Notes under the pieces: generated by a model | Told to the model about the DNA's origin: nothing | Databases searched by the model: none | The model's input: only the letters and a program-made list of their open reading frames with translations | Assembly: GCA_026770705.1 (NCBI GenBank) | Contig: JANJGN010000189.1 | Location: 496,001-560,000, forward strand | Source of the DNA: Isurus oxyrinchus | Taxonomy: Eukaryota | Direction: 5' to 3' | Length of the DNA: 64,000 nucleotides | Translations under genes and position numbers: made by a program | In this document: positions 19,404 to 63,404 of the stretch, in pieces | Numbering within the stretch: the first letter of the stretch is position 1 | How the letters are laid out: each line of letters begins with the position of its first letter

Positions 19404-19795
19404 ATAGGAACCACTGCCTTAGACACTGAGGATCTAGGACAGCTAGGCCAATTCATGATTCATGATGGTGATAATGGGGGAATTCTGAAGGCTCCTAATC
19501 CATTGTCCTAGTTTGTAAATACAGCAGTGAACTCACTTCAATTAGTGTGTCTTGTAGACACTGTGTTGGGTGGAAGACTGGCTTCACTAAACAGGTTCCT
19601 GAGGGCCACGAGCCAATGTAGAATGAACTTGTCCACTCCTGTATCCAGGATTCTCTTCAATGTGTTGTGAAACATTGGGGCATTCATTGTGAGTCCAGAC
19701 TGCAGCCACTGTGCCCCAGTGATGGAGGGGGTGGATTTTGAGTCTAGTGGATTGACAAAACATTCAGAGTTAAATATTGATATTTCTCCCCCTAG

Positions 19796-20161
19796 CTGGA
19801 CTACCACAAGTGTGGAAAGGTGACACTCCACAAGAGGTGACAGCGCAGGAAGGTTCGTGTGTACAGATTCCGTGTCATTACAGCTACCCATCATATTTAG
19901 TACCGAGATCACCTGTTGGAATCTGGTATATGAGAAGGAATTGGGAAACATGGTCTATAGCCTTTCACTCCAAGGATCACAGTCGCGAGTTACCACGGTT
20001 CCACCATCGGACCCGGCTTTCTGGAGACCTGAAAGATGGTGACTGTTCCCTGATTATAAACAACATCAGACGGGAAGATGCAGGATATTATTTATTCAGA
20101 ACAGATTTTGACAGCAGGAATAGATACAACGACCGTCCTGAAACCCAGCTTCATGTTTCTG
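19796..20161 (+). CDS. Siglec B: V-set exon V1 (loop-divergent)
   Basis: 366-nt phase 1-1 open exon, CCTAG acceptor and GTAAGT donor; CVQIPC, DCSL and YYLFR with the essential Arg retained. Confidence 0.88.
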
Positions 20162-21039
20162 GTAAGTGCTATGTTATAATTACTCAACAATTCACATCCA
20201 ACACTCAATGGGAAATAATAGTGTTTGATTTGCTTGTTTTTTGGCCGTGTTAACCAGCGTCACTATTTTTAATGATTTGTCTATTTCTGCTCCCAGATCC
20301 ATGAGCTTATTGTGTGTGATTGAATCCACATCATAGCTGTAACGTAAACCGAGCTGAGGGGTGATGACACCTCCCCCCTGAGTGAAGTGTCTCCTCCCCA
20401 CTACACCTTCCACCCCTCACACTGTCTGTGTAATCTCCCGTCCCATCCCCAGCCTCTCTTTCCCCTCCAAAGTCCTGCAACGTGTTTCCATCTCCCGAAT
20501 CCGTTCCCATCTTTCCCGGAACTCCATGTTTGAATCCCTCCAATCAGGTTCCCACCCCAGCCACTGTGCTGAAACAGCTCTTATTTTTATTGAGCCAATG
20601 CCAAGCCCCGATACCGAGCGAGAGCCTCCTCATTTGCTGAGTTTAAGGTGATGAGTCAGCCCCTTAGTCCGTAGAGGGGATTCTCCTCGGTAATGTGCAG
20701 CCTTGTTTGTGTCTCTCCACAAGCGCATGAGGGGTTTGTACAGAGGCTGCAGCGCTGGAGGGGGTCTGCACAGGGGTCCTGGCCTGTCCTGAGCCGGTTT
20801 TAGCAAGGACCACTCTGGCCTTGGCAGCTGAAAGCCAGCCATTGGACAGACGGGGCCTGTCACAAGGAGCCTGTTAGTCACTCCCCCCCCGTGTCTCCTG
20901 TGCTCAGATCCAGACCATGTTGGCTGGTGGATCTGGCTCAGGAAGGGTCCTCCCCATGGGACCCCCAGATGGAAGGTGGGTCGAGCGGGTCAGTCACTTG
21001 CATGTTTATTCTGCAGCTTTAATATTTTAAGAAAGTAAG

Positions 21040-21775: not shown

Positions 21776-21892
21776 ATTTGTTGCCATTCTCCTCAGTATT
21801 GACCATCCCCCCAATTCAGCCTCATCTGTAAATATCGGGTTCAGTGGATCCACAAACCATTCAGAGTTAAATATTGAGATTTCTCTCCCCAG

Positions 21893-22258
21893 CTGAACCC
21901 TCGCAAGAGTGGAAAGGTGACAATCCACGAGAGGTGACAGTGCAGGAATGTTCCTGTGTACAGATTCCATGTCATTACAGTTATCCATCGTGTCTGGAAA
22001 ACCAACCGCGAGGTGGAGTCTGGTTTAATAATGAGGAATGGAGAACATCGTCTATAGCCTTTCACTCCAAGGATCACAGTCACGAGTTACCACGGTTCCA
22101 CCATCGGACCCGGCTGTCTGGAGACCTGAAAGATGGCGACTGTTCCCTGATTATAAACAACATCAGACGGGAAGATGCGGGACCTTATTTTTTCAGAATA
22201 GAATTTGACAATGGTCTGAGCCATAACTATTACCCTGTAACCCAGGTTCACGTTTCTG
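21893..22258 (+). CDS. Siglec B: V-set exon V2 (near-identical to the Siglec A V exon)
   Basis: 366-nt phase 1-1 open exon, CCCAG acceptor and GTAAGT donor; YFFR Arg retained; two extra Cys. Confidence 0.88.
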
Positions 22259-22986
22259 GTAAGTGCTGTGTTATAATTACTCAACAATTCACATTCAACA
22301 CTCAATGGGAAATAACACAAACTGTGACGTTTACGTATTAACACAAAACACAGCTTATTATAACACACTGTCTGATTCTCAATAACCTGGTGATCGCTTC
22401 CAATTCACTCCTAAAGCAACCTCTAATACTCACTTTAATATCAATGATTAAATGTATTGACTGTGTCCATCAATGTTATCAGGTTATCCACTCCTATCGA
22501 TCTCTCTAATCCTGTCTCAAAGTCTGACTTAGCGACAGAAGAAAGATTCACATTTCTGTAGCACCTTTCACCACCTCAGCATGGACCAAATCACTTCACA
22601 GCCAATGAGCTGATTCCTGAATTGTAGTTACTATTGTAATGTGGGAAACACAGCAACCAATTTGCACACAGCAAGCTCCCACAAATTGCAAAGTAAAAAA
22701 TGGCCCAGATCGCTGAGTGACTGATGGGTTAGTGCACTCCAAACTCTGGTCTGCTCCACCACCCTCACCCACTATTATCAGTTCAAGTGTCTCGGAGTGA
22801 ACGTGTATTAAGCTGAGAGACAGAAACACCAAAGTCTCAAAGCAGGAAATTCTCTCCTAATCATTGTAACCTCTCAGATCTGATATCATCCTTGTAAAAG
22901 TGCTTTTTCTTGTGGGATTGTGATTTCTATTTGAACTGATGCTTCACGTTATATTTCTCTAAAAGGATCCATTCTCTGTCAGTTAG

Positions 22987-25744: not shown

Positions 25745-26460
25745 ACAGTGCAGCACTCCCTCAGATCAGACCCTCCGACAATGCAGAACTCCCTCAGTTC
25801 AAACCCTCCGACAGTGCAGCACTCCCTCAGTTCAGACCCTCCGACTGTGCAGCACTCCCTCAGTTCAAACCCTCCGACAGTGCAGCACTCCCTCAGTTCA
25901 GAACCTCCGACAGTGCAGCACTCTCTCAGTTCAAACCATCCGACAGTGCAGCACTCCCTCAGTTCAAACCCTCCAACAATGCAGCACTCCCTCAGTTCAA
26001 ACCCTCCGACAGTGCAGCACTCCCTCAGTTCAGACCCTCTGACAGTGCAGCACTCTCTCAGTTCAGACCCTCTGACAGTGCAGCACTTTCTCAGTTCAGA
26101 CCCTCTGACAGTGCAGCACTCCCTCATTTCAGACCCTCCGACAGTGCAGCACTCCCTCAGTTCAGACCCTCCGACAGTGCAGCACTCCTTCAGTTCAGAC
26201 CCTGCGACAGTGCAGCACTCCCTCAGTTCAAGCCCTCCGACAGTGCAGCTCTCCCTCAGTTCATACCCTCCGACAGTGCAGCACTCCCTCAGTTCATACC
26301 CTCCGACAGTGCAGCTCTCCCTCAGTTCAGACCCTGCGACAGTGCAGCACTCCCTCAGTTCAAACCATCCGACAGTGCAGCACTTCCTCAGTTCAAGCCC
26401 TCCGACAGTGCAGCACTCCCTCAGTACTGAACCTCCGACAGTGCCGCACTACCTCAGTAC
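25745..26460. repeat. 33-bp minisatellite, locally homogenised variant (cagttca[g/a]accc)
   Basis: About 21 tandem units sharing a variant core not seen in the other arrays. Confidence 0.92.
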
Positions 26461-27959
26461 TTCTCCGCCGATGCTGCCAGACCTGCTGAGTTTTTCCAGG
26501 TATTTCTGTTTCTGTTTCTGTTTTGGATTTCCAGCATCTGCAGTTGTTTTGATTTTAGTGCTGGGCAGTTCCTCAGCAAGGATTCAGGCCACAAAACATT
26601 GCGAGTGCTGTGGGTCTGCGCCACGATTTAGAGAGCTGTGCTTGGCACGCCTATTCTAGTCCCAGTCCAGTGTGGTGGGGACAGCCTGGCAGTCCTGGGT
26701 TGGTGGTGCCCAGCATGGTATGAGTGACGTGGTCAGTCCCTCACACACGTCCATCCTGGGGGTGGGTGGCTTGATACTAGGCCGCAGGTGGCACAATCCC
26801 AGTCAGGGGAGGCATCTGCAGCCTGTCAGTGGGGAGCAGGTAATATAGAGGGTAGGGGTGGGGGTGGGAATCGAGGGGGGCCAGTGGTCTCTGTAAGTCA
26901 CAGTACAATGGGCCTCTAGTTGGAGAGAGGTCAGGTCTACATGGGGCATTGGGATGTCAACATCAGACAGTCTAGGGAGGAGGACTGGGATGTCAACCCC
27001 GAACACAATAAGATCAAGGATTAGAGAGGAAGGGAGGAGACTGATTGGAAGGAGGGGAATGTGCACATTATGCTCCTCCAGCACGATGGGAGGGACTGTG
27101 ACGGTTACGGGGGTCGGGGGGTGACGTGTGAGGGGATAGACGCTTACCTGGTGGTATTGCCTCAGCCTCACCCTTTTTCAAGCTGATCCAATGTCGCAGT
27201 TGAAGAATAAGCTACAAAACAAATTGGCAGGGGAGGTCTCCCAGGGCCTGTGGGAGACATCACCCACTGCATCTTCGGCCTGTTTGAAGGGGCACCCGAA
27301 CAATTCCGGCTTTTCCAAATGATGAGGAAGACACAGCTGCACCCCGAGTCCCCTACTGGGGATCCAGAAGGTTGCAATAGCGCTGCGAGGGACTCATGGG
27401 CTCCACAGTGACTCCCTAATTAGCAACTGGAAGGTTTATGTTCATTTATCTTTATTATCCGTTCATATTGAGCAATGGAGCTCCTGATTTGTCACCTTAC
27501 TGTACCTCGTCCAATGCTTCTGTTATCAAGACTTCCACATCGATGTGAAAGAGCCATGATGATAGCAGACAGTCGCACAATGGGAATGGCACTAGGCCAG
27601 TGATCCAGAGGCCCAGGTGAATGCTTTGAAGGCACGGGTTCAAATCCCACCACGGCAGCTGGAGGAATTTCAGTTCGATTAATCAATAAATTTAATTGAT
27701 TGATACATTTTTTTCTTATTCATTTCAGGGATGTTGGTGTCGCTGGCTAGGCCAGTATTTGTTGCCCATCCCCAATTGCCTTTGAGAACATCTGGATATC
27801 TGAGTTAGGATCAGGAGTAGGTCACTCAGTCCCTCGAACCTGCTCTGCCATTCAGTAAGATCATGGCTGATCTGATTGTCACCTCAACCTCACATTCCTG
27901 CCTACCCCCAATGACCTTTCACCCCCTTGTTAATCAAGAATCTATCTAGCTCTGTGGAA

Positions 27960-29900: not shown

Positions 29901-31901
29901 CTGGATGTGACATCTGGAATGCGAAGCTAGTCTCAGTAATGGTGACCATGAAACTAAGGCCAATTGTTGCAAAAACCCATCTGGGTCACTAATGCCCTTT
30001 GGGGAAGGAAACCTGCCGTCCTTACCCATTCTGGCCTACGTGTGACTCCTGACCCACAGCAATGTGGTTGACTCTTAACTGGCCCCTGAAATGGCCGAGC
30101 AAGCTACTGAGTTATATCAAAACCCGCCACAGACCAGTCAAACCAGGTGAACTGCAGCACTTCGAAAAGGCAGCTCAGCACCCCCTTCTCAAGGGGTCAG
30201 TCAGGAACAGGTAACAAACGCTGTCCACATCCCGTGAAAGAATTTTGGTAAAAAGGTAGCCGTGTATCACCACCCACGGCCAGCGCCAACCCCCCCACCC
30301 CTACCTGATTGCACCAGTTTCAGATTACACCAGGTCAATGAACGGATAGAAACTCAAACCAATGAGATGAGCACAGAGAAGGATCAAGCCAGAGAGAGTT
30401 GGTGGGAAGAATTGGGAAAGCAACAAAAAAGGCAGAGCGGACACTAACACTATAACAAAGTAAAGACCAGAGGAGGAAGGAAGCAAGTGCGAAGAGGAAT
30501 TGAGAGTAGAGCTGGTAGGCTGCTTGTTGAAGCCAAGGAACCTCCATAGGGCACATCCACAGTGCTGTTGGGGAGGGTGATACATGATTTTGACCCAGGA
30601 TCATCAAGTGTTGCACTGGCAGAGCCTTTAAAGTAAAGGGACCTTTACTACCCGTGCACCCCCCCGCCCTACAAAGCTGTTGACCTGCTGAGTCCACCTG
30701 TACAGGCAACCTCCAGACAGTTGGCTACAGAGGCCATTGCAGCTGCTGAATATGACTTCCAGTTTCAAACCCTTCATGAATGCAAGGATGGAGAATTCAG
30801 CAGGAATATTCCTGCACATCCTGTGGCAGATCCTGTAAATAAAAGGGACCTTCAATCACTCCCCAAAGCTGCTGACCTGCTGATTCACATCTACAGGCAA
30901 CCTCCAAATAGTCAACTAGAGAAGACAACGCAGCTGCTGAATGTGACTCCTAGTTTTAAACCCTTCACTCTGGAAAGAAGGAATCCAGTGCAATGGCCTC
31001 AGTATGATTCTTCACAGAAACTGATTTTAAATCTCATGTCTAAGTATTATTTTTCCTTTGCTTACATTTTAATCCCTGCACCTGATGGCTTTATCGCTTC
31101 AACTTAAATAACTTTCAGCAGGAGCCAGGTTCAAATTGAATGGACAAGCTGGCTTGGGGGGCCAAAAGGCCTACTCCTGCTTCTGTTTATTTATGTTGGT
31201 GTTGTTATGTAGTGGAACTAGAGAGGTTATAGCAGTTATGAGAACATTAAGCAAACAGCAGCAAGAATTGAACACCTACGTTGTGGTTTATGAAAAGGTT
31301 TTCAACCTGGTCAACTGGTAAAATCTGTTGAAAGTGGGCTATCATGGCGTGTGCCCTTTGTGAGATATTTGTAACAACGTTCTCGATGTCGGAACAGCTT
31401 GCATTGAACAAAGCTGATCTTTACCCAGAACTTCAGAGGAAGGGGGGACAATTGTTCCCTGGTGTGGGGGGCATGGTGGGGGGGAGGGTGAGGGAGAGAC
31501 AAGTAGCCTGAAATACCAAGCCAGACACTTTGTGAAGACACAAGTTGTTTATTCATTTTTTTTCACAAATCATAATCTTTACAATTAAAGTCCCGACAAG
31601 ATGATGGTGAATCATGAACACATTGTCGGGGTCAATCTGTGCCCGGGAGCATAAAGCAGCAAAATCAGGAGCCCGCTTTACATCACTCTGAATTTTAACT
31701 ATCATTAACCCCAGTAACATCCATTCAAATGACTTAGTCATAAGATTCCTCACACATTCACTTGCACACTCACACACCCACACCCACACAGACACACTGA
31801 CACACTCACTCATTCACATTGACACACACTGACACAGTCACACACACCCACACAGACACACTGACACACTCACTCATTCACATTGACACACACTGACACA
31901 G

Positions 31902-31939
<38 letters not shown>

Positions 31940-32398
31940 ACACAATCACACACATTCACATTGACACGCACTAACAGTCACACATACACACACACACGCT
32001 GACACAATCACACACATTCACATTGACACACACATATTGACAGTCACACACACACACACACACACACGCTCATAAAGACAGACACAAACACAGTCACGTG
32101 AGGTGAATAGTGTCGATGTATTTAAGGGGAAGCTGGATAAACACATGAGGGAGAAATGAATAGAAGGATATGGTGATGGGGTGAGATGGAGAAGGGGTGG
32201 GCGGAGACTCGTGTGGAGCAGAAACTCCAGCATGGAACAGATGGGCCGAATGGCTCCTTTCCCTGCTGTAAAACGCAGGTAAAGTTTCAGTTGGAATTAA
32301 TGAACAGGGCCTGTGTGAAATAGATTGCTAAGCAGTAGATAAGGAGGGGAGAGGCTGTGGCATGGTGCAGGATGACCTTGCGTGAATGAGGCCAGGGT

Positions 32399-32515
32399 CT
32401 AATATCTACAGCAGAGACCACAAGTCTCATTTGGTCCTCTCCAATTACAGCAGTTACAGCAGAATATGCAGAGCTGCTGTCTGTCCATTCTCTTCTGGCG
32501 CTGCAGCAAGGAGCC
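32399..32515 (-). CDS. HAMP: HAMP exon 3 (furin site and mature peptide)
   Basis: TTTTCCAG acceptor at 32516-32517; TAG at 32399-32401; CIFCCNCC...CGLCC. Confidence 0.95.
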   Translation of the reverse strand, partial: GSLLQRQKRMDRQQLCIFCCNCCNWRGPNETCGLCCRY

Positions 32516-35500
32516 CTGGAAAAGCAGGAGGACAATAGGTGAGAACATTCCGGAAAGAAAGAAGGCATCATTTCAATCAGGCGCGTCATTGGAAGGAGGA
32601 TGGCGCATTTCTATAGCGCCTTTCCCCTCCTCGGGATGGCCCAAAGTGTTCCACAGCTGAAGGAAGGACTTTTTCTGAAGTGAGCTCACCGCTGTAATGT
32701 AGGAAACGCAGCAGGCAATTCACGCACAGCAAGATCCCACAAACAGAAATGTGATAATGGCCCCGATTTTCAGTTTTTTACCAATGTCAGTTGAGGGATA
32801 AATGTTTGCCCCAGGAAAGCAGACATAACTGCATCCCATCCACCCCCCACCACCCCCTCCACACATACCCCCAACTCCTGACGCACTTCATTTAAATTGT
32901 GGCCATGGAATCCTCTACATCCATCTGAGAGGGCAGATGTTGTCTCAGTTTAACATCTCATCTGAAAGACAGCGCCTTCAACAGTGCAGCACCCCCTCAG
33001 TACTGACCCTCCGACTGTGCAGCACCCCCTCAGTACTGACCCTCCGACTGTGCAGCACCCCCTCAGTACTGACCCTCCGACTGTGCAGTCCCCCGCCGGT
33101 ACTGACCTTCTGACAATGCAGCACTCCAAGACTGACTGTCTGACAATGCAGCGCCCCCTCAGTACTGACCCTCCGACTCTCCTGCCCCCCCGCTGGTACT
33201 GACCCTCCGACAAATCGGTAATTTCTCAATTATGCCTGGTGGTCCTTTTAACTCAGAGCTGAGAGTTGCAGAGAATCGAGCAGACACCCTGAACTGACAC
33301 TTGCAGTGCAAGTACTGGGAGCGCGCTGGTCATTATCATGCTGCTGTCTGTGGGATCTTACTGTGCGCCAATGGCTGATTCTTTTCCCACAGTACATCAG
33401 TGACCTCACATGAAAGAAAAAAAGCACTTGATTGTCTGCGAAACAGTTTGGGACGTCCTGATGTGTTGGAAGGCGCTAGAGAAATGCAAGAGTTGACGTT
33501 TCGAGTCCTCATGACCCTTCTGAGGACTCGAAACGTCAACTCTTTTCTTCTCCGCCGATGCTGCCAGACCTGCTGAGTTTTTTCAGGTAATTCTGTTTTT
33601 GTTTTGGCTTTCCAGCATCTGCAGTTTTCTTTGTTTTTATAGAGAAATGCAAGTCCTCTTTGTCTTTCACTCGATCCTCTAAGGTGTCTGTTGATTAACC
33701 AGCCTCTCGGTGTTTGATGTAGGCCTGGTTATAAACAGGTAGAAGGATCAAATATCAAAAATGCTTTGGCTGACAGTCAAACCGATTGTGCATTCGGAGA
33801 GATTAGATACGGTCTGCACACAATGACTCCAGTCTCTGGCACTGACTGCCGCCTGGGGTCTCCCTTCCACATAACACTCACAACTTGCATTTACACAGCG
33901 CCTCTGACATTGCAAAATGTCCCAGCCCACATTACCGGAGCGTAAATCAGAGAGAAGTCTAACACTGAGTCACATATGGAGATATTAGGGATAGGTGACC
34001 AAAAGCTTGGTCAAAGATGTCAGTTTTTAAGGAGCGTCTTAAAGGAGAGAGAGAGAGAGAGGCAGAGAGGTTAAGGGAGGGTATTCCGGAGCTCAGGGCC
34101 CCAGGCAGCTGAAGGCACGGCCACCAATGGTAGAGCGATGGGAATCAGGGGGACCCGGGAGATGCAGTAATGTCAGAGATTTTGGAGGAACATCGGGACC
34201 GGAGGAGGTGTTCTCCTGCTCCATATCTCTCTCTCTCTTCCTCTCTTCCACTCCTCCTCTCCCTGTCTCTCTCTCTCCTACTCTTCCGCTCAATTGCCCT
34301 CTCTCCCAATCTTTCTCTCCTCTCTCCCTTTTCCTGTCTCTCTCCCTCTCTCTCCCCTGTCTCATTCTCCCACTCTGTATCTCTCCCTCTCTCTCACACT
34401 ATTTTTGTAACTTTCGCTCACTCTGTAACTCTCCCTTTCCTGTTAATTTCTCTCTCTTGGACAATCTCTCTTCCCTTTTCACTTTCCCTCACTCTGCATC
34501 TCTTTAATTTCTCCCTCTGTCACTCTCTCCCACCTATGTTCTTTCCCTTTCACCCCTCCCCGTCCCACTCTCTGTCTCTCTCTTCCAATCCCTCCCTCCC
34601 CCATTCCATCCCTCTCTCCGACTCTCGACTCCCAGCCTCTCTTTAACCCACTCCCAGGCTGGATCAGTCTCCCTCTCACTATTCCCGGCGTGGGTTACAT
34701 TTAAAATTCCTGTGGGGATATGTTCACTTCCTTGGAATTGCCTCTTCCCAGCTTTGCAAAAAAAGTGGGGTGGGGGGGCTCGATTTCAAACATGCCTCCT
34801 GAGTATAACCGAGACAGACTGCCACTGAAATCAGCTTGAAATCAGAAAACTTTCTGTGGAAGAAACGAGCAGGGAGAAACCTTAAAATAAGGAATGAATT
34901 TCCACCTACCGTGTCCGGGGAATCCACAGATTTCTCAATCGTCGAAGAACCTAAAGCAGTGTCAACCTGCAAAAAGAAAGAATTTATCAGGGAGAAAGTG
35001 AGAGGAGGATTGAGGGAGAGGGAGAGAGAGAGAGAGAGGTACAGGAGAGAGAGAGGGAGGAAGACAGACTTGCATTTCTCTAACGCCTTTCACCACATCC
35101 CAAAGCATTTCACAGCCACTGAAGGATGTTTTTGAAGTGCACTCACACTGTAGGAAATGTGGCAGCTGATTTGTGCACAGCAAGATCCCACAAATAGCAA
35201 TGTGATCATGGCCTAGATCATCTGTTTTTGGTGATGTTGGGTGAGGGATAAATATTGGTCCCAGGACACCGGGCAGAACACCCCCTGCTCTTCCTCCAAA
35301 TAGTGGCTGTGGGATCTTTCACACCCGCCCGAGAGGGCAGACGGGGGACTCGGTTTAATGTCTCATTCAACATTGTTGTGCTCCCTCAGTACTAACCCTT
35401 TGACACTGCAGCACTCCCTCAGTACTAACCCTTCGATAGTGCTGCGCTCCCTCAGTACTGTCCCTCCGTCAGTGCAGCTCTATTTCAGTACTAACCCTTC

Positions 35501-37369
35501 GACACAGCAGCACTCCCTCAGTACTGACCTCCGACAGTATAGCACTCCCTCAGTACTGTCCCTCCAATAGTGCAACACTTCCACACTACTGACCCTCTGA
35601 GAGTGCAGCACTCCCTCAGCACGGAGCGTTGATCTACATTATGGGACTGAATTCCCTGGAGTGAGACTCAGACCAGTGATTTAGGTAGGGTTGTGGGGGC
35701 TGGAGGAGGTTACAGAGATAGGGAGGGCTGTAGAGGCTGTAGGAGGTTACAGAGAAAGGGAGGGTTGTAAGGGCTGTAGGAAGTTACAGAGATAGGGAGG
35801 GTTGTAGAGGCTGTAGGAGGTTACAGAGATAGGGAGGGTTGCAGGGGCTGGAGGAGGTTACAGAAATAGGGAGGGCTGTAGAGGCTGTAGGAGGTTACAG
35901 AGATAGGGAGGGTTGTAAGGGCTGTAGGAAGTTACAGAGATAGGGAGGGTTGTAGAGGCTGTAGGAGGTTACAGAGATGGGGGAGTTGTGGGGGCTGGAG
36001 GAGGTTACAGAGGTAGGGAGGTGTGTAGGGGCTGTGGGAGGTTAAAGAGATGGGGGGGTTGTGGGGGCTGGAGGAGGTTACAGAGATAGGGAGGTGAGTA
36101 GGGGCTGTAGGAGATTAAAGAGATGGGGGGGTTGTGGGGGCTGGAGGAGGTTACAGATGTAGGGAGGGTTGTAGAGGCTGGAGGAGGTTACCAAAATAGA
36201 CACTGCTGTAGGGGCCACAGTAGGTTACAGAGATAGGGAGAGTTATAGTGTGGAGAGGAGGTTATAGAGTTCAGGAGGATTGTAGGGGCTGGAGGAGGTT
36301 ACAGTGATTGTGAGGGTTGTGGGGCCTGGAGGATTTTACAGAGATAGGGAGGGTTGTAGGGTCTGGAGCAGGTTACAGAGATAGGGAGGGTTGTAGGGTC
36401 TGGAGCAGGTTACAGAGATAGGGAGGGTTGTAGGGTCTGGAGCAGGTTACAGAGATAGGGAGGGTTGTAGGGTCTGGAGGAGGTTACAGTGATCGTGAGG
36501 GTTGTGGGGCCTGGGGGAGGTTACAGAGATAGGGAGTGTTGTGGGGACTGTAGGAGGTTACATAGATAGGGAGGGTTGTCGGGTCTGGAGGAGGTTACAG
36601 AGATAGGGAGGGTTATAGGGACGGGAGGAGGTTACAGAGATAGGGTGGGTTGTAGAGACTGTAGGATGTTACAGAGATAGGGAGGGTTGTAGGGGTTGGA
36701 GGAGGTTACAGAGATAGGGAGGGTTGTAGGGGCTGGAGGAGGTTACAGAGATAAGGAGGGTTGTAGGGGCTGGAGGAGGTTATAGAGATAGGGAGGTTGT
36801 ACGGGCTGGAGGAGGTTACAGAGATAGGGAGGGTTGTAGGGGCTGGAGGAAGTTACAGAGATAGGGAGGGTTGTAGGGGCTGGAGGAAGTTACAGAGATA
36901 GGGAGGGTTGTAGGGGCTGGAGGAGGTTACAGAGATAGGGAGGGGTGTAGGGGCTAGAGGAGGTTACAGAGATAGGGAGGGTTGTAAGGCCTGGTGGAGG
37001 TTACAGAGATAGGGAGGGTTGTAGGGGCTGGAGGAGTTTACAGAGATAGGGAGGGTTGTACGGGCTGGAGGAGGTTACAGAGATAGGGAGTCGCTGAGGA
37101 GGGATTGAAAACAAGAATGAGAATTTCAGGGGAAATGACAGAAGGAAATGATGTTAAATTCATAGAGGGCGACAATATTAAAGGCACGAACATAATTTTA
37201 TCAAACTGCGGAAGAGACCAGTCTATCTGGGTGGTAGACGTAGAGTCATGTGCAAGAAACACCTCACCCAGAGGGACATCTCTTAGCTTACCCTCGACAA
37301 GGAGAAGAAGTGACTCAGCTGCAGGGAGAGCAGCAAAGTCAGAGTGAACAAGACAAGTCGCCATTTCAT
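32399..37369 (-). CDS. HAMP: Hepcidin prepropeptide, 83 aa; join(37369-37292, 34966-34910, 32515-32399): MKWRLVLFTLTLLLSLQLSHFFSLSR VDTALGSSTIEKSVDSPDT GSLLQRQKR/MDRQQLCIFCCNCCNWRGPNETCGLCCRY
   Basis: Three exons (78+57+117 nt) with GT-AG phase-0 introns. Signal peptide, prodomain, furin site RQKR and the C-CC-CC-C-CC 8-Cys hepcidin motif. It lies among Siglec genes, as human HAMP lies beside MAG/CD22. Confidence 0.93.
32600..33210 (-). mobile_element. SINE (DeuSINE/SacSINE1-like) ending in a 33-bp minisatellite expansion (32980-33210)
   Basis: The minus strand has GCTGTCTTTCAGATGAGATGTTAAAC, resembling the Deu core as I recall it, and runs directly into the minisatellite. A similar copy is at 35065-35625. 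Confidence 0.55.
33488..33640. mobile_element. Young Penelope-like-derived insertion with a perfect 24-bp hairpin and a 14-bp TSD
   Basis: Arms 33488-33511 and 33521-33544 with a 9-nt loop; TAGAGAAATGCAAG duplicated at 33477 and 33640. Confidence 0.7.
34910..34966 (-). CDS. HAMP: HAMP exon 2 (prodomain)
   Basis: CTTTCTTTTTGCAG acceptor, GTAGGT donor, 57 nt open in phase 0. Confidence 0.8.
35685..37090 (+). repeat. 37-bp G-rich minisatellite (ggggctggaggaggttacagagatagggagggttgta) in HAMP intron 1
   Basis: About 38 tandem units. Confidence 0.92.
37292..37369 (-). CDS. HAMP: HAMP exon 1 coding part (signal peptide)
   Basis: ATG at 37369, hydrophobic leader, GTAAGC donor, TATA box ~90 nt upstream. 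Confidence 0.88.
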
Positions 37370-37456
37370 CTGGGAGCTTCCCATCTCTGCCTGTCTCTTC
37401 TGATCTTCTGGCTCTGCTTTGATGCTTTGGTTTGTAACTAGAGGAGCTTCCTGCTC

Positions 37457-37667
37457 TTATACCTGAAACACTTGAAGGGGACAGCCGGGGGCGGGTTGCT
37501 GTGTGGTATCACACCCATTTCTGGATATTGCAGTGTCGATGTTCCCTGTCCCACTGGCCTGGGACCAGCAGTAAGGTCACTGGGACATTGACTGTCTGGC
37601 GCCGAGAACTATCAGTCCCTCCACAACGCCCTTCACCTTGTGCAAATATGTGTTCATATTGATGCAA
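37457..37667 (-). promoter_or_regulatory. HAMP proximal promoter: TATAA (37457-37461), GC box (~37487), BMP-RE GGCGCC (37598-37603) with adjacent Smad CAGAC, C/EBP TTGCACAA (37638-37645), C/EBP-ATF TGATGCAA (37660-37667)
   Basis: Motifs read directly. GGCGCC and C/EBP sites are established regulators of mammalian HAMP. Confidence 0.7.
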
Positions 37668-39739
37668 CACAACATAGCAAAAACATAGGGGCTGGTTCTT
37701 ATGTCGGCAAATCAGGTGAAGCGCATGCCCCCTAACCCCTTACTCCTCTCATTGCTCCTCCTTCCTGCCAGACACTTACTATTTTACAAATTGTGTGCGT
37801 TGCTTTTATTTCGGACAAGGGGCCTCGAGGGGGAACTGATTTACGCTGAGGTTTAGGGGTTAACAGCCATGTCATGTGTTGATCGGTCAGTGTTTACCAT
37901 GTGGAGACTGTCTGTCACCAGCTTTGTTAATGGTTTATCCAGGAACATTGAAGGGCATGAACGTTCTTGCTTTGTATGGAACAAGTCACCAACTGGGTTC
38001 AGTCATCGACTCAGACTCACATCAACATAAACTGGCTTCTGACAGGTAAGTTTCTATTACATGAGGGTAGGAGGAGGCCATTTGGCCCCTCAAGCCTGCT
38101 CCACCATTCAAAGAGTTCATGGCTGATCTGCAAACTAGCCCCATATTCCTTTGTCCCATCTCCTTTAATACCTTTGGATAACAAAAATCTATCAGTCTCA
38201 CAGGTTTAAAATGAACAACTTGATCGTGCATCAGTTCCTGTTTGGGGAAGAGAGTTCCAAATTTCTCCCACCCTTTGTACTTCCTAATTTAATTCCTTTT
38301 TAGGCTCTGACCCCGAGTCCCAGACTCCCCCCAACCAGGGGAAATGGTTTCTCTTTATCGCCCCCGATCTGTTCCCCTTATTATCATGCGAACTTTCATC
38401 AAATCTCCTGCTTAACATTCTAACTTCCAGGGAATACAAGCCGAGTTTGTGTTTAATCTCTCCTTGTGATTTAACCCTTGGAGTCCCGGTCTCATTCTGG
38501 TAAACTGACACTGCTCTCCCTCCGAGGTCAATATATCCTTCCTAAGGTGTGGGGCCCAGAATGTCTCACAGTGACTCCAGGTGTGGTCTAGCCAGGGCTT
38601 TATGTAGACTGAAGCATGACCTCTGCCCCCTTATATTCTAATCCGTGAGATAGAAAGGGCAGAGTTCCAGAATTGTTGTGTTTATTCGACAACAGAATAA
38701 CAGAGGAAGGTTTCCTCTCTGCCCTCTTCAGCCCCACTGGGAAGGTCAGGATGAGAAGGTTGGGCTGGGTCCCCTGTACTGGACACTCGCTGAATCTTCC
38801 AATGATAGTTCTGGGCTGGATTTCAAAACGCATAGACAAGGATTCAGTGTTCCATCACATTCTGCCTTTGTCTCTTTTCCTCTCGTTCTCTTTCTCTACC
38901 ATCCTCTCTCTCTATCTATCTATCTTTCTCCTCATTCTCTCCTGCTTCATCTCTATCACTTTCTTTCTACTTCTTTGTGTGTCTCTGTCTGTCTCTCTCT
39001 CTCACTCTTTCTTTCCTTGTCCTTATCTCTTTCAGTGTCTCCCTCTTTCTCTCTCTCTCTCTCTCTCTAAATGTGCCCCTCTCTAACAGTTTGGCCCAGT
39101 ACTCTTATTTCCCTGTTTTACTGGTGTTCCATTTGAAGGTATACAAGACCAGATCAGACCAGAATGTTTATTTTCCAGTGTTTACTGTGTTTTTTTCATT
39201 CTGGGTGTCTCTCGACTCTGTCTGTCCCTCTCTGTCCTTTTATTTCATTCTTTCATGTGATGTGGACATCACTGCCTAGGCCAGCATTTATTGCCCAACC
39301 CTAATTGCCCTTGTTCAGAGGCCACTTTTTAAAAGTGAACCACATTGCTGTGGGTCTGGAGTCACATGTTGGCCAGACCAGGTAAGGACAGCAGATTTCC
39401 CTCCCTAAAGGGCATTTGTGACCCAAATACAAGAATCAGCAATGGTTTCCTGGTCATCATCGGACTTTTAATTCCAGGATTTTATTGAGTTCAAATTCCA
39501 CCAACTACTGTGGTGAGATTCTAACCAGGGTCCCAGGACCATTACACTGGGTCTCTGGATTACTGGTCCAGTGAAAATACCATCAGGCCAACACCTCCCC
39601 ACTCTTCCCTTCCTCCATCTTTCACACTTGTTCTGTCTCTCTCTCACTCTCCTTCTCTCTTCTCCCTCTCTCAGTCTCTGTCTGTCTCTCAATCTCTCTA
39701 TCACTCTCTATCTCCTGGAGGCTCTCTCTCTCTGACTGT

Positions 39740-48259: not shown

Positions 48260-50312
48260 CTGACACTGGCTAGGCCAGAATTTATTGCCCATCCCTAATT
48301 GTCCTTGAGAATATGGGGGTGAGCTGCCTTCTTGAGCTGCTGCAGTCCCTGTGGTGTATGTACACCCACAGAACTGTTTGGGAGGGTGTTGCAGGATTCT
48401 GACCCAGCGACAGTGAAGGAACGGTGATATATTTCCAAGTCAGGATGGTGAGTGACTTGGAGGGGAACTTCCAGGTGGTGGTGTTCCCATGTGTCTGCTG
48501 CCCTTGTCCTTCGAGATGGTAGTGGTCATGTGTTTGGAAGGTGCTGTCTAAGGAGGCTTGGTGACTCCCTGCGTTGCATCTTGTAGATGGTACACACACT
48601 GCTGCCACTGTGCGTCAGTTGTAGAGGGAGAGAATGTTTGTGGACGGGGCGCAAATCAAGCGGGGCTGCTTTGTCCTGGACGGTGTCGAGCTTCTTGAGT
48701 GTTGTTGGAGCTGGACACATCTAGGAAAGTGGAGAGTATTCCATCACTTGTGACCTGTGCCTTGAGGTTGGTGGACAGGCTTTGGGGAGTCAGGAGGTGA
48801 GTTACTCACCACAGGATTCCCAGGCTCTGGCCTGCTCTTATAGTCACAGTGTTTATATGGCTAGTACAGTTCAGTTTCTAGTCATTGGTAACCCCCAGAG
48901 TGTTGATAGTGTGGGATTCAGCAATGGTGATGCTATTGGACATTAAGGGGAGATGGATATATTCTCTCTGGTTGGAAATGGTCATTGCCTGGCACTTGTG
49001 TGGCATGAATGTTACTTGCCACTTGTCAGGCCAAGCCTGGATATTGTCCAGGTCTTGCTGCATTTGGACATGGACTGCTTCAGCATCTGATGAGTCATGA
49101 ATGATGTTGAATGTTGTGCAATCATCAGCGACCTTCCATAATTCTGACCATCTGATAGAATGAATGTCATTGATGAAGCAGCTGAAGATGGTTGGGCCTA
49201 GGACACTACGCTGAGCAACTCCTGCAGTGATGTCCTGGAACTGAGATGACTGACCTCCAACAACCACAACCACCTTCCTTTGTACTTGGTATGAATCCAA
49301 CGAGTGGAGAGTTTTCCCTGTGACATGACATGGCAGATGATGTGTGCTTGGTGCTCCAAATCCACAAGGGAAAATTGGTCACGCTATCACAATAGTTTTG
49401 CAATTTGTATTTATTACAAGAAGCGTGCACTGAATTCAGGAGTAATGAGTTGACCACAACCTTTAGAGATTTTAAAAATTCAATTAAGATATTTATTAAC
49501 AAAATAAAAGATTTCAAGTACAGACATAATACCACGGTTAGTTACAGCTAAAATATATTCTCAAATTCCTAATTAACCTGACTCCCAGTTACAGAGCCTG
49601 TTTAAGGCAACAGTCCAAAATAAGATTTTAGATTAAAAACAAACCCAGCGAGTTAACACAGCACACACTTGACACTGGAATTCTAAATGGGTTTCTCCAA
49701 CTTTATTTACTGAACATAACAGACTTATGCACAAATGCTTGGAGGCTTCTTCAAGCCTGTTTCACACACTCCTGTTAGATCTTACATGGCCCCCAACATA
49801 GCCTTTCATTCTCCTTTATACATGTTTCTCTCTCTTTGATGTGTAAATTCTTTGGAGCTGTACCTTTCCCATAATATAAACTTTCATGTTGCCAATATTG
49901 TCAATGAAGTTTGGGTAAAATTAAAAAAAAACTCCTTAGCTTTGCTTATTGGGCTTGTCCTAAACAGACCAACATCCCTTTGAAATCTAAACAGCCCCTT
50001 CACACCTTACATGCTAACACAGCCTCCATGTGTTCTCATTAGCATTTCAAGTACATTTCTACATCTAGCTTCTTTTGATAATCTCAAACTTGCAGTGTAC
50101 CTGTCTCCAGATGTAATTAAACCACACAGACAGACCCATCTACACTCACACCCAGAAACCTAGTTTACAACAAACCAGGAAAATATTAAGCAAATTATTA
50201 TACTTTCGTACCACCCCTGATTCCCATTGACTCCAGTTTTACTCGGGATCCTAGATGCCACACTCGGTCAAATGCAGACTTGATGTCAAAGGCAGTCACT
50301 CTCACCTCACCT
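48260..50312 (-). mobile_element. CR1-type LINE fragment carrying a nested solo LTR at 49319-50213
   Basis: RT motif GVAQRSVLGPTIFSCFIND...ADD. The LINE text gttttccc|cccctgattcccattgactcc is split by the TGT...CCA element. Confidence 0.85.
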
Positions 50313-52846: not shown

Positions 52847-53656
52847 CTGTAAAAACAGCCATTAATTACTGCACTACAGGTTTACAATGATGCTCCGATG
52901 TATCTCGAGAAGCGATACACTCACTCAGTGTTTAAATACTCATTCTCGGGCAATGCTGACATTTATTGTCCATCCCTAGTTTCCCCTTGAGAAGGTGGTG
53001 GGCGGTCTTCCTCCTGAACCACTGGTTTGTCCCAAACTGGGAGACCAGTTCAGAGGGCAGGTGTGAGTTAACCATGTTGGTGTCTGAGACTGGAGTCACA
53101 TCCACATCGAGACATGCTTCCCTCCCTAAAGGGTATGTAGTCTCTACACATGTAACAACCAACCTCACTGAAATAATCGACTATCAGGTCATTATCACAC
53201 GGTGGTTTGCGGGATCTTGCTGTGCACAAATCAGTACCTGTGTTTCCTACATTACAACAGTGAGCTCACTTCGATAATGCTGCATTGGCTGTTGAATGTT
53301 TAGTAATTTCTAAGCAATTTATGAATACAATAGTTGCATTTCAACATGTAACATTTATATATAATATTTATCAATTAAAGAATGAGATGTTCAGCAATTA
53401 AAAGGGTTGTTCAGGACAGTTAGAGAGAGAAAGGTCATCAAGTACGGAGATTGGAAACGAAGACGTGACAGCCTTGTCCTCACAACCATTGAAGGAGAAA
53501 CTGAGAGCAAAAACAGAAAGGGAGAGGAAAAATTGGGTGTGTGGATAACGTGGACTGAGCGAGGATTGAAGAAAACTGGATTAAAAACAACACGATCCCA
53601 ATGGCTCCACGGAGACCACGGAGACAACAAACAAACAAATGTATCTCCACACTCAC

Positions 53657-53938
53657 GTTCCACAGTGATGGTTATGAACGCCTCCACTGCTCCATGTTCA
53701 TTCTCTGCCACACACTGATAGTCTCCAGTGTCCCTGGATGTAACGTGAGGAATCACCAACCACAGCTCATTGTTGGAACTTGTTCTGTTCATTGGGACAT
53801 TAAGATGTCGCCACATCAGGTTAGAAGCTGGGAAGCTCTCGACAGAGCAGATTATCACTGCAGAATTCCCCTCAATTATATTGATTGATGAAGCGTAAAT
53901 CATATTAAGCGAAGTAAATGAGAGATCCTGTGGTGCAT
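53657..53938 (-). CDS. Siglec C: membrane-proximal C2-set exon
   Basis: 282 nt, open, C...W...DTGDYQC. Confidence 0.88.
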
Positions 53939-54678
53939 CTAAAAACAAATCAAGTGTTTAATGTGAGCAAACCTATTGCACAGCAAGACTCCATGCATCA
54001 TCTCTCTGTATCTGATGTCTGAATGCATTTCCAGGTAACTTCCCTCAGGATAACGTCTTATGCCACATTTTTAATGAACACTGCCTATGTAAACTGTCAC
54101 ACTGCAGTTGCATTCTCCCACCAGTAGAGGTGTTGTCCATCTAGAATGAAAGAAGCTTGCTTTCACATCCTCAGGATTTCGCAAAGGGCTGGACAGGCAA
54201 TGAATTGTATTTGATTGATGGAGCACTGAGGGGTAAATCTACAATTCTCTGTTCAGGAGGTTGCTCATCCAATTCAGGGTCTTGTTGATCTGGAGTTTAC
54301 CTTCCTTCAACACAGAATCGGAGCTGATACCAAGACTCCAGTGCGGCACTGAGAGAGGAGAGGGAACTCACGTGTGTGTATCTGTGTGTTTGTGTTTCTG
54401 CACATGTGAGTGTGTTTGTGTGTGTATGCACACATGTGTCTGTGTGTGCGCATGCGCATGTGTCTGTGTGTCTAGGTCTGTCCATGAGTGAGAGTATGTG
54501 TATGTGTGTGTCTATGTGTGGGCATGAATGTGTGTGTGTGTTTGAGATGGGTGTGTATTTTCCTGTGTATGTGCTTGTATGTGTATGACTGTGTGTGGAT
54601 AATTATGCATGTGTGTGCCTACAGGTTTCTGTCTGTGTGTGTGTGTGTCTGTGTGTGTGTGCGTGTGTGTGTGTGTGT

Positions 54679-63075: not shown

Positions 63076-63404
63076 GTACAAATTCATTACTGATCGGAAC
63101 TCAGGGAATTGGATTCTTTCCTGGAGTGAGGAAGTGAACATTTAATTTTAGAGAACAGGGTTAGTGATCACACAGAGATTGAGTGAATAGCGAGTCAGAG
63201 AATATAGCAAAAGAAAAAGCCTCATACGGACTCGAAACACCAACTCTGTTTCTCTCTCCACAGATGCTGTCAGACCTGCTGAGTTTTTCCAGCATTTTCT
63301 GTTTGTGCATCAGAGAGCTTGTTTCAATAGGAATGACAGTGCATTTATATAGCACCTTTAATGCAGTAAAACATCCTTATTGCTTCACAGGATTCCCCCA
63401 CAAG

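Follow-up and report, generated by a model that had tools for sequence, protein, structure and literature searches.

We analysed a 64-kb stretch of DNA from the shark Isurus oxyrinchus, hereafter the window, and found that it carries a genuine, intact three-exon gene of the hepcidin family on the minus strand, in the region 37500-32300 (all coordinates are positions in the window). The predicted mature peptide has the eight cysteines of hepcidin, and the residues before the first of them are not those of the canonical, ferroportin-binding start. As the best explanation, to which we assign a probability of roughly 60%, we propose that the gene is a diverged, hamp2-like side copy within a multi-copy shark hepcidin family located among CD22/Siglec-like genes, and that it has been released from the role of iron hormone. 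Two observations together argue for a side copy freed from this role, namely that the mature part is the least conserved part of the precursor, the inverse of what is expected of a hormone orthologue, and that a transcript of a canonical sister hepcidin was detected.

The gene is compact, and its structure was read from the sequence and its translation. The reading frame is intact, both introns are of the GT..AG type and in phase 0, and the layout is the one typical of hepcidin: exon 1 encodes the signal peptide, and exon 3 encodes the convertase site together with the mature peptide (Table 1). Translation of exon 1 gave a hydrophobic signal-type segment, and exon 3 carries GSLLQ followed by RQKR. 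An initial annotation of the window, made from its letters, had proposed this minus-strand gene, and its splice sites, its RQKR and its 29-residue peptide with eight cysteines were all confirmed by translation. It had also given the prepropeptide as 83 residues; the splicing behind this figure was correct, whereas the length probably was not. Two in-frame ATGs lie 15 nucleotides (nt) apart, one at 37369 with C at -3 and one at 37384 in the better context, with G at both -3 and +4; the upstream one adds MGSSQ to the precursor. Because exon 1, read from the upstream ATG, aligns along its full length with hepcidin-1 of the sevengill shark Heptranchias perlo (residues 1-31), a precursor of 88 residues that starts at 37384 is more likely than one of 83.

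Family membership was assessed on single exons rather than on the joined 88-residue product, which holds for all searches, alignments and the fold prediction reported here. The exon 3 peptide matched the Pfam family Hepcidin (PF06446) with 31.7 bits and an E-value of 1.9e-7 (cut-off 27), and the cysteine pattern C-x2-CC-x-CC-x(n)-C-x2-CC is present near its C-terminus with n = 8. A six-frame scan of the window turned up the CC.CC motif once, in this exon, and neither a second hepcidin nor a second copy of any of the exons was found in the window by motif scan, blastn or tblastn. In an exhaustive search of representative sequences with exon 3 as the query, the only matches at E<1e-3 were two hepcidin-1 isoforms of Heptranchias perlo, the 38-residue query being too short for more. 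Word-indexed protein searches with the exon 3 open reading frame (ORF), with Heptranchias hepcidin-1 and with a profile added no relatives. A search of the PDB with the single exon 3 peptide gave no match, and human hepcidin was reached by profile only: a three-sequence profile of the window and Heptranchias peptides matched human hepcidin 1m4f and others at an E-value of 0.022. An AlphaFold2 model of the exon 3 peptide, built on a three-row alignment, was all-helical with a predicted local distance difference test score of 56.7 and was discarded as unusable, and a match of 0.76 to a plant hypothetical protein in the ESM Atlas was regarded as meaningless.

Splicing of the gene was observed in sequencing run X1 (organism A), whose RNA nature was guessed by the tool and whose tissue is not stated. 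The junction 32515/34910 was present in nine X1 contigs and in one further contig of depth ~13,900, and the junction 34966/37292 in ten X1 contigs with a summed depth of ~10,800, so that both junctions named in the initial annotation are found in transcripts. Both show CT..AC on the plus strand, which corresponds to GT..AG for a minus-strand gene, and short X1 overhangs at 32516 carry the final letters of exon 2. The word depth of X1 was 154,000-606,000 in exon bins versus ~800-1,300 in non-repeat intron bins (>100-fold), depths that do not separate the window copy from its near-identical twins. Depths of this kind are the signature of RNA rather than DNA, here from a gene with very strong expression and accompanied by some pre-mRNA. 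A minor isoform in X1 includes a 155-nt cassette exon at 33570-33724 (joints 32514>33569 and 33723>34909, depth 510-844), which accounts for a few percent of the junction depth and carries in-frame stops that lead to early termination, as in a poison exon. The cassette derives from a dispersed hairpin-type repeat with further copies near 1625-1733, 26460-26557 and 63228-63307. Run X5 gave a single junction contig with a depth of 24. Runs X7 and X8 (organism B) contained repeats of the introns only and no exon, and their word shares of 0.07-0.10 are therefore mostly repeat matches.

The window gene was compared with two Heptranchias perlo proteins, hepcidin-1 (XP_067831448.1) and hepcidin-like (XP_067831447.1), both of which are automatic NCBI annotations and the second of which sits in the same 90% cluster as the hepcidin-1 isoforms. 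All three precursors are laid out as 31+19+38 residues and end in a 29-residue mature peptide. They share a MxSSQMK start (MGSSQMK in the window, MRSSQMK in Heptranchias hepcidin-1) and a GSLL..R.KR pro tail, with the convertase site REKR in Heptranchias and RQKR in the window. Against hepcidin-1, exon 1 is 48% identical over 31/31 residues (residues 1-31), and exon 2 has the same length with 8/19 residues identical, as counted by eye in a gap-free register in which BLASTP gave no alignment. Exon 3 is 51% identical to residues 51-87 without gaps; 7/9 residues of the pro tail are identical, while in the mature peptide only 4/21 non-cysteine residues are. With the prepro region at 42-48% identity, the mature part thus appears diversified on a conserved prepro region. 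The eight cysteine columns and the T-C-G after the loop between the fifth and sixth cysteines are invariant between the window and Heptranchias peptides.

This loop was regarded by the initial annotation as a peculiarity of the window peptide. Its length of eight residues stood up to alignment, with a four-residue gap against 1m4f, and its peculiarity did not, as the loops of the Heptranchias peptides, NKKGARIT and NKKDARIT, are as long as NWRGPNET of the window. The 8-residue loop is, on the aligned sequences, common to two shark species. Because it also occurs in Heptranchias hepcidin-1, which has the canonical start WTHVPIC, the long loop is unrelated to the loss of the canonical N-terminus. 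Hence the reservation of the initial annotation, that both the N-terminus and the loop might already be normal for cartilaginous fishes, applies to the loop only. At one loop position, Gly alternates with an acidic residue in both species in parallel, with Glu in the window species and with Asp between the two Heptranchias hepcidins.

The N-E-T sequon that the initial annotation had noted is indeed present in the loop, and it is not conserved, with R-I-T at this place in both Heptranchias peptides. If the loop Asn were N-glycosylated, clearance or receptor use of the peptide might be altered, which would be compatible with the other readings discussed below. The sequon lies in a secreted precursor, in a loop long enough for exposure. 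Its absence from both Heptranchias peptides speaks against such a modification, as does its location, ten residues from the C-terminus and adjoining a disulfide cysteine. Sequons near a C-terminus or beside a disulfide cysteine are glycosylated inefficiently by oligosaccharyltransferase. We consider glycosylation of this loop improbable.

The N-terminus is where the window peptide leaves the canonical form. Its start, M-D-R-Q-Q-L-C, does not fit the type-1 start motif x-[TS]-H-[FL]-[PS]-[IL]-C. Residues 1-6 are all replaced, with His3, Phe4 and Pro5 of human hepcidin corresponding to Arg, Gln and Gln, and comparison with the human, sea bass and Heptranchias starts bore out the earlier description of a lost His-containing N-terminus. 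Structures of the complex show hepcidin touching ferroportin with its first six residues and binding metal at the Cys326/His507 site with its C-terminal carboxylate, and a mimic of residues 1-9 suffices (PMC9882908). What the window peptide keeps is the number of six residues before Cys1, the stretch Cys7-Ile8-Phe9 and the two-residue C-terminal tail.

A hepcidin with a canonical start was found in the same run. One X1 contig follows the window as far as 32486, where the Met codon behind RQKR ends, and then continues with 38 differing letters. A 30-letter consensus of the overhang, read by hand in frame on the gene strand, gives S-H-L-S-I-C-M-Y-C-C, with its cysteines in the register of the window peptide. 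Considering that this register matches exactly, a chance origin is unlikely. The SHLSIC start is of the QSHLSLC type of teleost (sea bass) Hamp1, and the gene for this transcript does not lie within the window. A hepcidin of the canonical type is thus very probably expressed in the animal as well. A comparable pair exists in Heptranchias, where hepcidin-1 has the canonical start WTHVPIC and hepcidin-like the diverged start WTDEPHC, on prepro regions that are near-identical. Among the explanations put forward in the initial annotation, that of a hamp2-like paralogue is favoured by both the SHLSIC-type contig and the Heptranchias pair.

The closest parallel to a diverged side copy is Hamp2 of teleosts, which in sea bass likewise lacks a QSHLS-type start, exists in several copies and stands beside a canonical Hamp1 (PMC5665920). 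In that fish, ferroportin is regulated by Hamp1 and not by Hamp2 (PMC5665920). The window gene has the features of a type-2 hepcidin in this functional sense, namely a canonical copy alongside, Gly/Glu variants and a mature peptide that has diversified while the prepro region stayed conserved. There are differences as well: the loop of both sea bass peptides has five residues (PNMSG) compared with eight in the window (PMC5665920), and antimicrobial activity has been shown for Hamp2, whereas it is hypothetical for the window peptide. The likeness is one of analogy and not of orthology, because Hamp2 arose by a teleost duplication and its origin is independent. Under the proposed mechanism, the 88-residue prepropeptide would enter the secretory pathway by means of the exon 1 signal peptide, and a furin-type convertase, as in other members of the family, would cut after RQKR to leave a 29-residue hairpin peptide with four disulfides. 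The window copy would then be a functional analogue of Hamp2 that has presumably lost its activity on ferroportin, while the canonical SHLSIC-type copy would keep the iron-hormone role. The likeliest job of the window copy would be in host defence or inflammation, probably not by simple cationic membrane attack.

Several observations weigh against the proposal of a hamp2-like side copy. The canonical paralogue is represented by one contig overhang of 38 nt, and the comparison within sharks is with a single species, Heptranchias perlo. The mature peptide has a charge of ~+0.4 and an isoelectric point of 7.5 and contains no His, whereas Heptranchias hepcidin-1, with its T-H-x-P-I start, has a charge of +3.8; the form with Glu in the loop has one acidic residue more. 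Given this near-neutral charge, which is unlike that of typical cationic antimicrobials, and the still more acidic Glu form, a classical cationic membrane mechanism is not favoured. Moreover, as Cys7-Ile8-Phe9, the length of the N-terminus and the C-terminal spacing are kept, some binding to ferroportin is possible. A GGCGCC motif as in the promoter of iron-regulated HAMP lies ~215 nt upstream of the ATG; the motif occurs three times in the window versus 1.29 expected, which is not significant, and it is the position alone that is suggestive.

These points bear on a different explanation, in which the window peptide is still an iron-regulatory ligand that uses the retained Cys7-Ile8-Phe9 together with the C-terminal carboxylate to bind either a co-evolved ferroportin or the second, Cys326-less ferroportin of cartilaginous fishes. 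The identity of C-I-F to human hepcidin, the six residues before Cys1, the two-residue tail after the last Cys, the GGCGCC motif and the very high transcript level would all suit such a ligand, and some cartilaginous fishes do have a second ferroportin without an equivalent of Cys326 (Nemeth and Ganz, PMC8235187). On the other hand, the replacement of His3, Phe4 and Pro5 by Arg, Gln and Gln falls within the six residues that contact ferroportin (PMC9882908), a canonical SHLSIC-type transcript is present in the same run, and a mature peptide that is the least conserved part of its precursor (4/21 non-cysteine residues) is unexpected for a hormone. We therefore regard a retained iron-regulatory role as unlikely. 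Co-evolution with a divergent ferroportin, which the initial annotation had raised, is neither supported nor excluded.

A more speculative explanation holds that sharks evolved, independently of teleosts, a greatly amplified family of hepcidins in the Siglec cluster, extremely highly expressed and with near-neutral charge and a long loop, and that these are not simple antimicrobials but ligands of new targets, such as the Cys326-less ferroportin peculiar to cartilaginous fishes, or circulating N-glycosylated forms. Its new-target part is kept alive by the second ferroportin without Cys326 (PMC8235187). We consider this explanation very doubtful as a whole.

The remaining observations that count against the side-copy proposal concern the source of the transcripts. 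Wherever an X1 contig and the window disagree within an intron (32633, 33739, 34364, 34765-34779, 35274, 36260-36278 and 37136), the whole depth carries the other letter, and at 32280, which is 120 nt beyond the stop codon, a transcript contig of X1 parts from the window sequence. As such, the expression seen in X1 is not assignable to the window copy. A further difference lies at 32436, in the loop, where a C>T change on the plus strand turns Gly at mature residue 18 into Glu in 306,161 of 456,463 depth (18 contigs). About two thirds of the depth thus encodes Glu, which indicates that other near-identical copies or alleles exist. These three differences would also fit a window copy that is a silent or decaying duplicate, with all transcripts stemming from near-identical twins. 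However, the frame, both pairs of splice sites, the TATA box and the convertase site are all intact, and about one third of the exon 3 depth (~150,000) has exactly the Gly codon of the window. The missing intron alleles prove nothing, because rare variants are lost from contigs and the run may be of a different animal. A silent duplicate seems quite unlikely to us.

Beyond 32280, the window sequence is single-copy within the window and then runs into a CA-rich microsatellite block at 31750-32092. The region 32100-32280 could be an insertion or duplication boundary in the 3′ untranslated region (UTR) of the window copy. No AATAAA was found on inspection of the 3′ flank of the gene in the window.

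Compared with human hepcidin-25 (PDB 1m4f, 2kef, 3h0t and 6wbv), the window peptide has the same pattern of eight cysteines with an identical C-I-F-C-C stretch, and the two genes are alike in having three exons, a furin site and MAG/CD22-type Siglecs as neighbours. The peptides differ in the loop, which has four residues in the human peptide (n = 4) and a four-residue insertion exactly there in the window peptide, as placed by the profile alignment to 1m4f. They also differ at the start, where D-T-H-F-P-I is replaced by M-D-R-Q-Q-L and His3 of the amino-terminal copper and nickel binding (ATCUN) motif is gone.

The presumed joint origin of hepcidin and ferroportin is placed at the root of the jawed vertebrates, Cys326 of ferroportin being first seen in cartilaginous fishes (PMC8235187). 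Hepcidin is among the proteins detected in the plasma proteome of the nurse shark (PMC9207270), and a hepcidin entry was absent from the supplementary file of that paper. In the open literature we found neither a shark hepcidin sequence printed or analysed nor any of five peptide motifs. The window gene shows the scaffold with the 8-residue loop to be present in no fewer than two shark lineages, and in both of them hepcidin appears split into canonical and diverged copies, in parallel to Hamp1 and Hamp2 of teleosts. The origin of the split between hormone and defence peptide would thereby become testable outside bony fishes. For annotation, the locus points to a gene family that is expressed very highly and escapes tracks built on ORFs.

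Table 1. Coordinates of the hepcidin gene and its parts in the 64-kb window of Isurus oxyrinchus DNA
Feature	Position	Strand	Basis and remarks
GGCGCC, core of the bone morphogenetic protein (BMP)-responsive element as in mammalian HAMP promoters	37598-37603		~215 nt upstream of ATG
TATA-like box, TATAAGA	37455-37461	-	Read from sequence; 77 nt upstream of first ATG; putative function
Exon 1 coding part, 31 codons, signal peptide	37292-37384	-	Translation; followed by GTAAG
Intron 1, GT..AG	34967-37291	-	Sequence and contig junctions; holds tandem array and SINE-like repeats
Exon 2, 19 codons, pro-region	34910-34966	-	Pyrimidine tract and AG before, GTAGG after
Intron 2, GT..AG	32516-34909	-	Holds SINE-like repeats and minor repeat-derived cassette exon
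Exon 3 coding part, 38 codons and TAG stop (32401-32399)	32399-32515	-	AG before; pro tail, convertase site, mature peptide
RQKR, furin-type convertase site	32489-32500	-	Translation; cleavage predicted from family
Predicted 29-residue mature peptide, 8 Cys, start MDRQQLC	32402-32488	-	Translation
Cys5-Cys6 loop NWRGPNET, 8 residues	32423-32446	-	Translation, alignment
N-E-T sequon inside loop	32423-32431	-	Translation
Proximal 3′ UTR common with transcripts	32281-32398	-	Depth 605,810 in bin 32250-32424

Further elements were noted upstream of the gene and within its introns. Half-matches to C/EBP sites, TTGCATCAAT- and TTGCACAAG-like, are located at ~37650-37670. Intron 1 contains a tandem array at 35682-37090, in which a 37-bp unit is repeated ~38 times with 85% matches. 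Pieces of this array occur at high depth in each of the four runs, among them the organism B runs that lack the exons, so it is a widespread satellite-like repeat. Blocks resembling short interspersed nuclear elements (SINEs), with a 33-bp unit of the GTACTGACCCTCCGAC type, occur at 32984-33211 in intron 2 and at 35381-35619 in intron 1, each with ~100 blastn matches in the window, and these blocks explain most of the depth in the organism B runs.

The hepcidin gene is flanked on both sides by Siglec-like genes. Exons with V-set and Ig_CD22 domains lie at 19777-20250 and 21874-22338 on the plus strand, in tandem and 2.1 kb apart, and an I-set immunoglobulin exon lies at 53394-53948 on the minus strand. 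In mammals, hepcidin is found beside Siglec genes of the MAG/CD22 type, the human order being USF2-HAMP-MAG-CD22. The CD22/Siglec-like neighbours in the window therefore support orthology of the locus. On the minus strand, 48881-49300 holds a fragment of a reverse transcriptase (RVT_1, scoring below the Pfam cut-off) that is probably a decayed long interspersed nuclear element.

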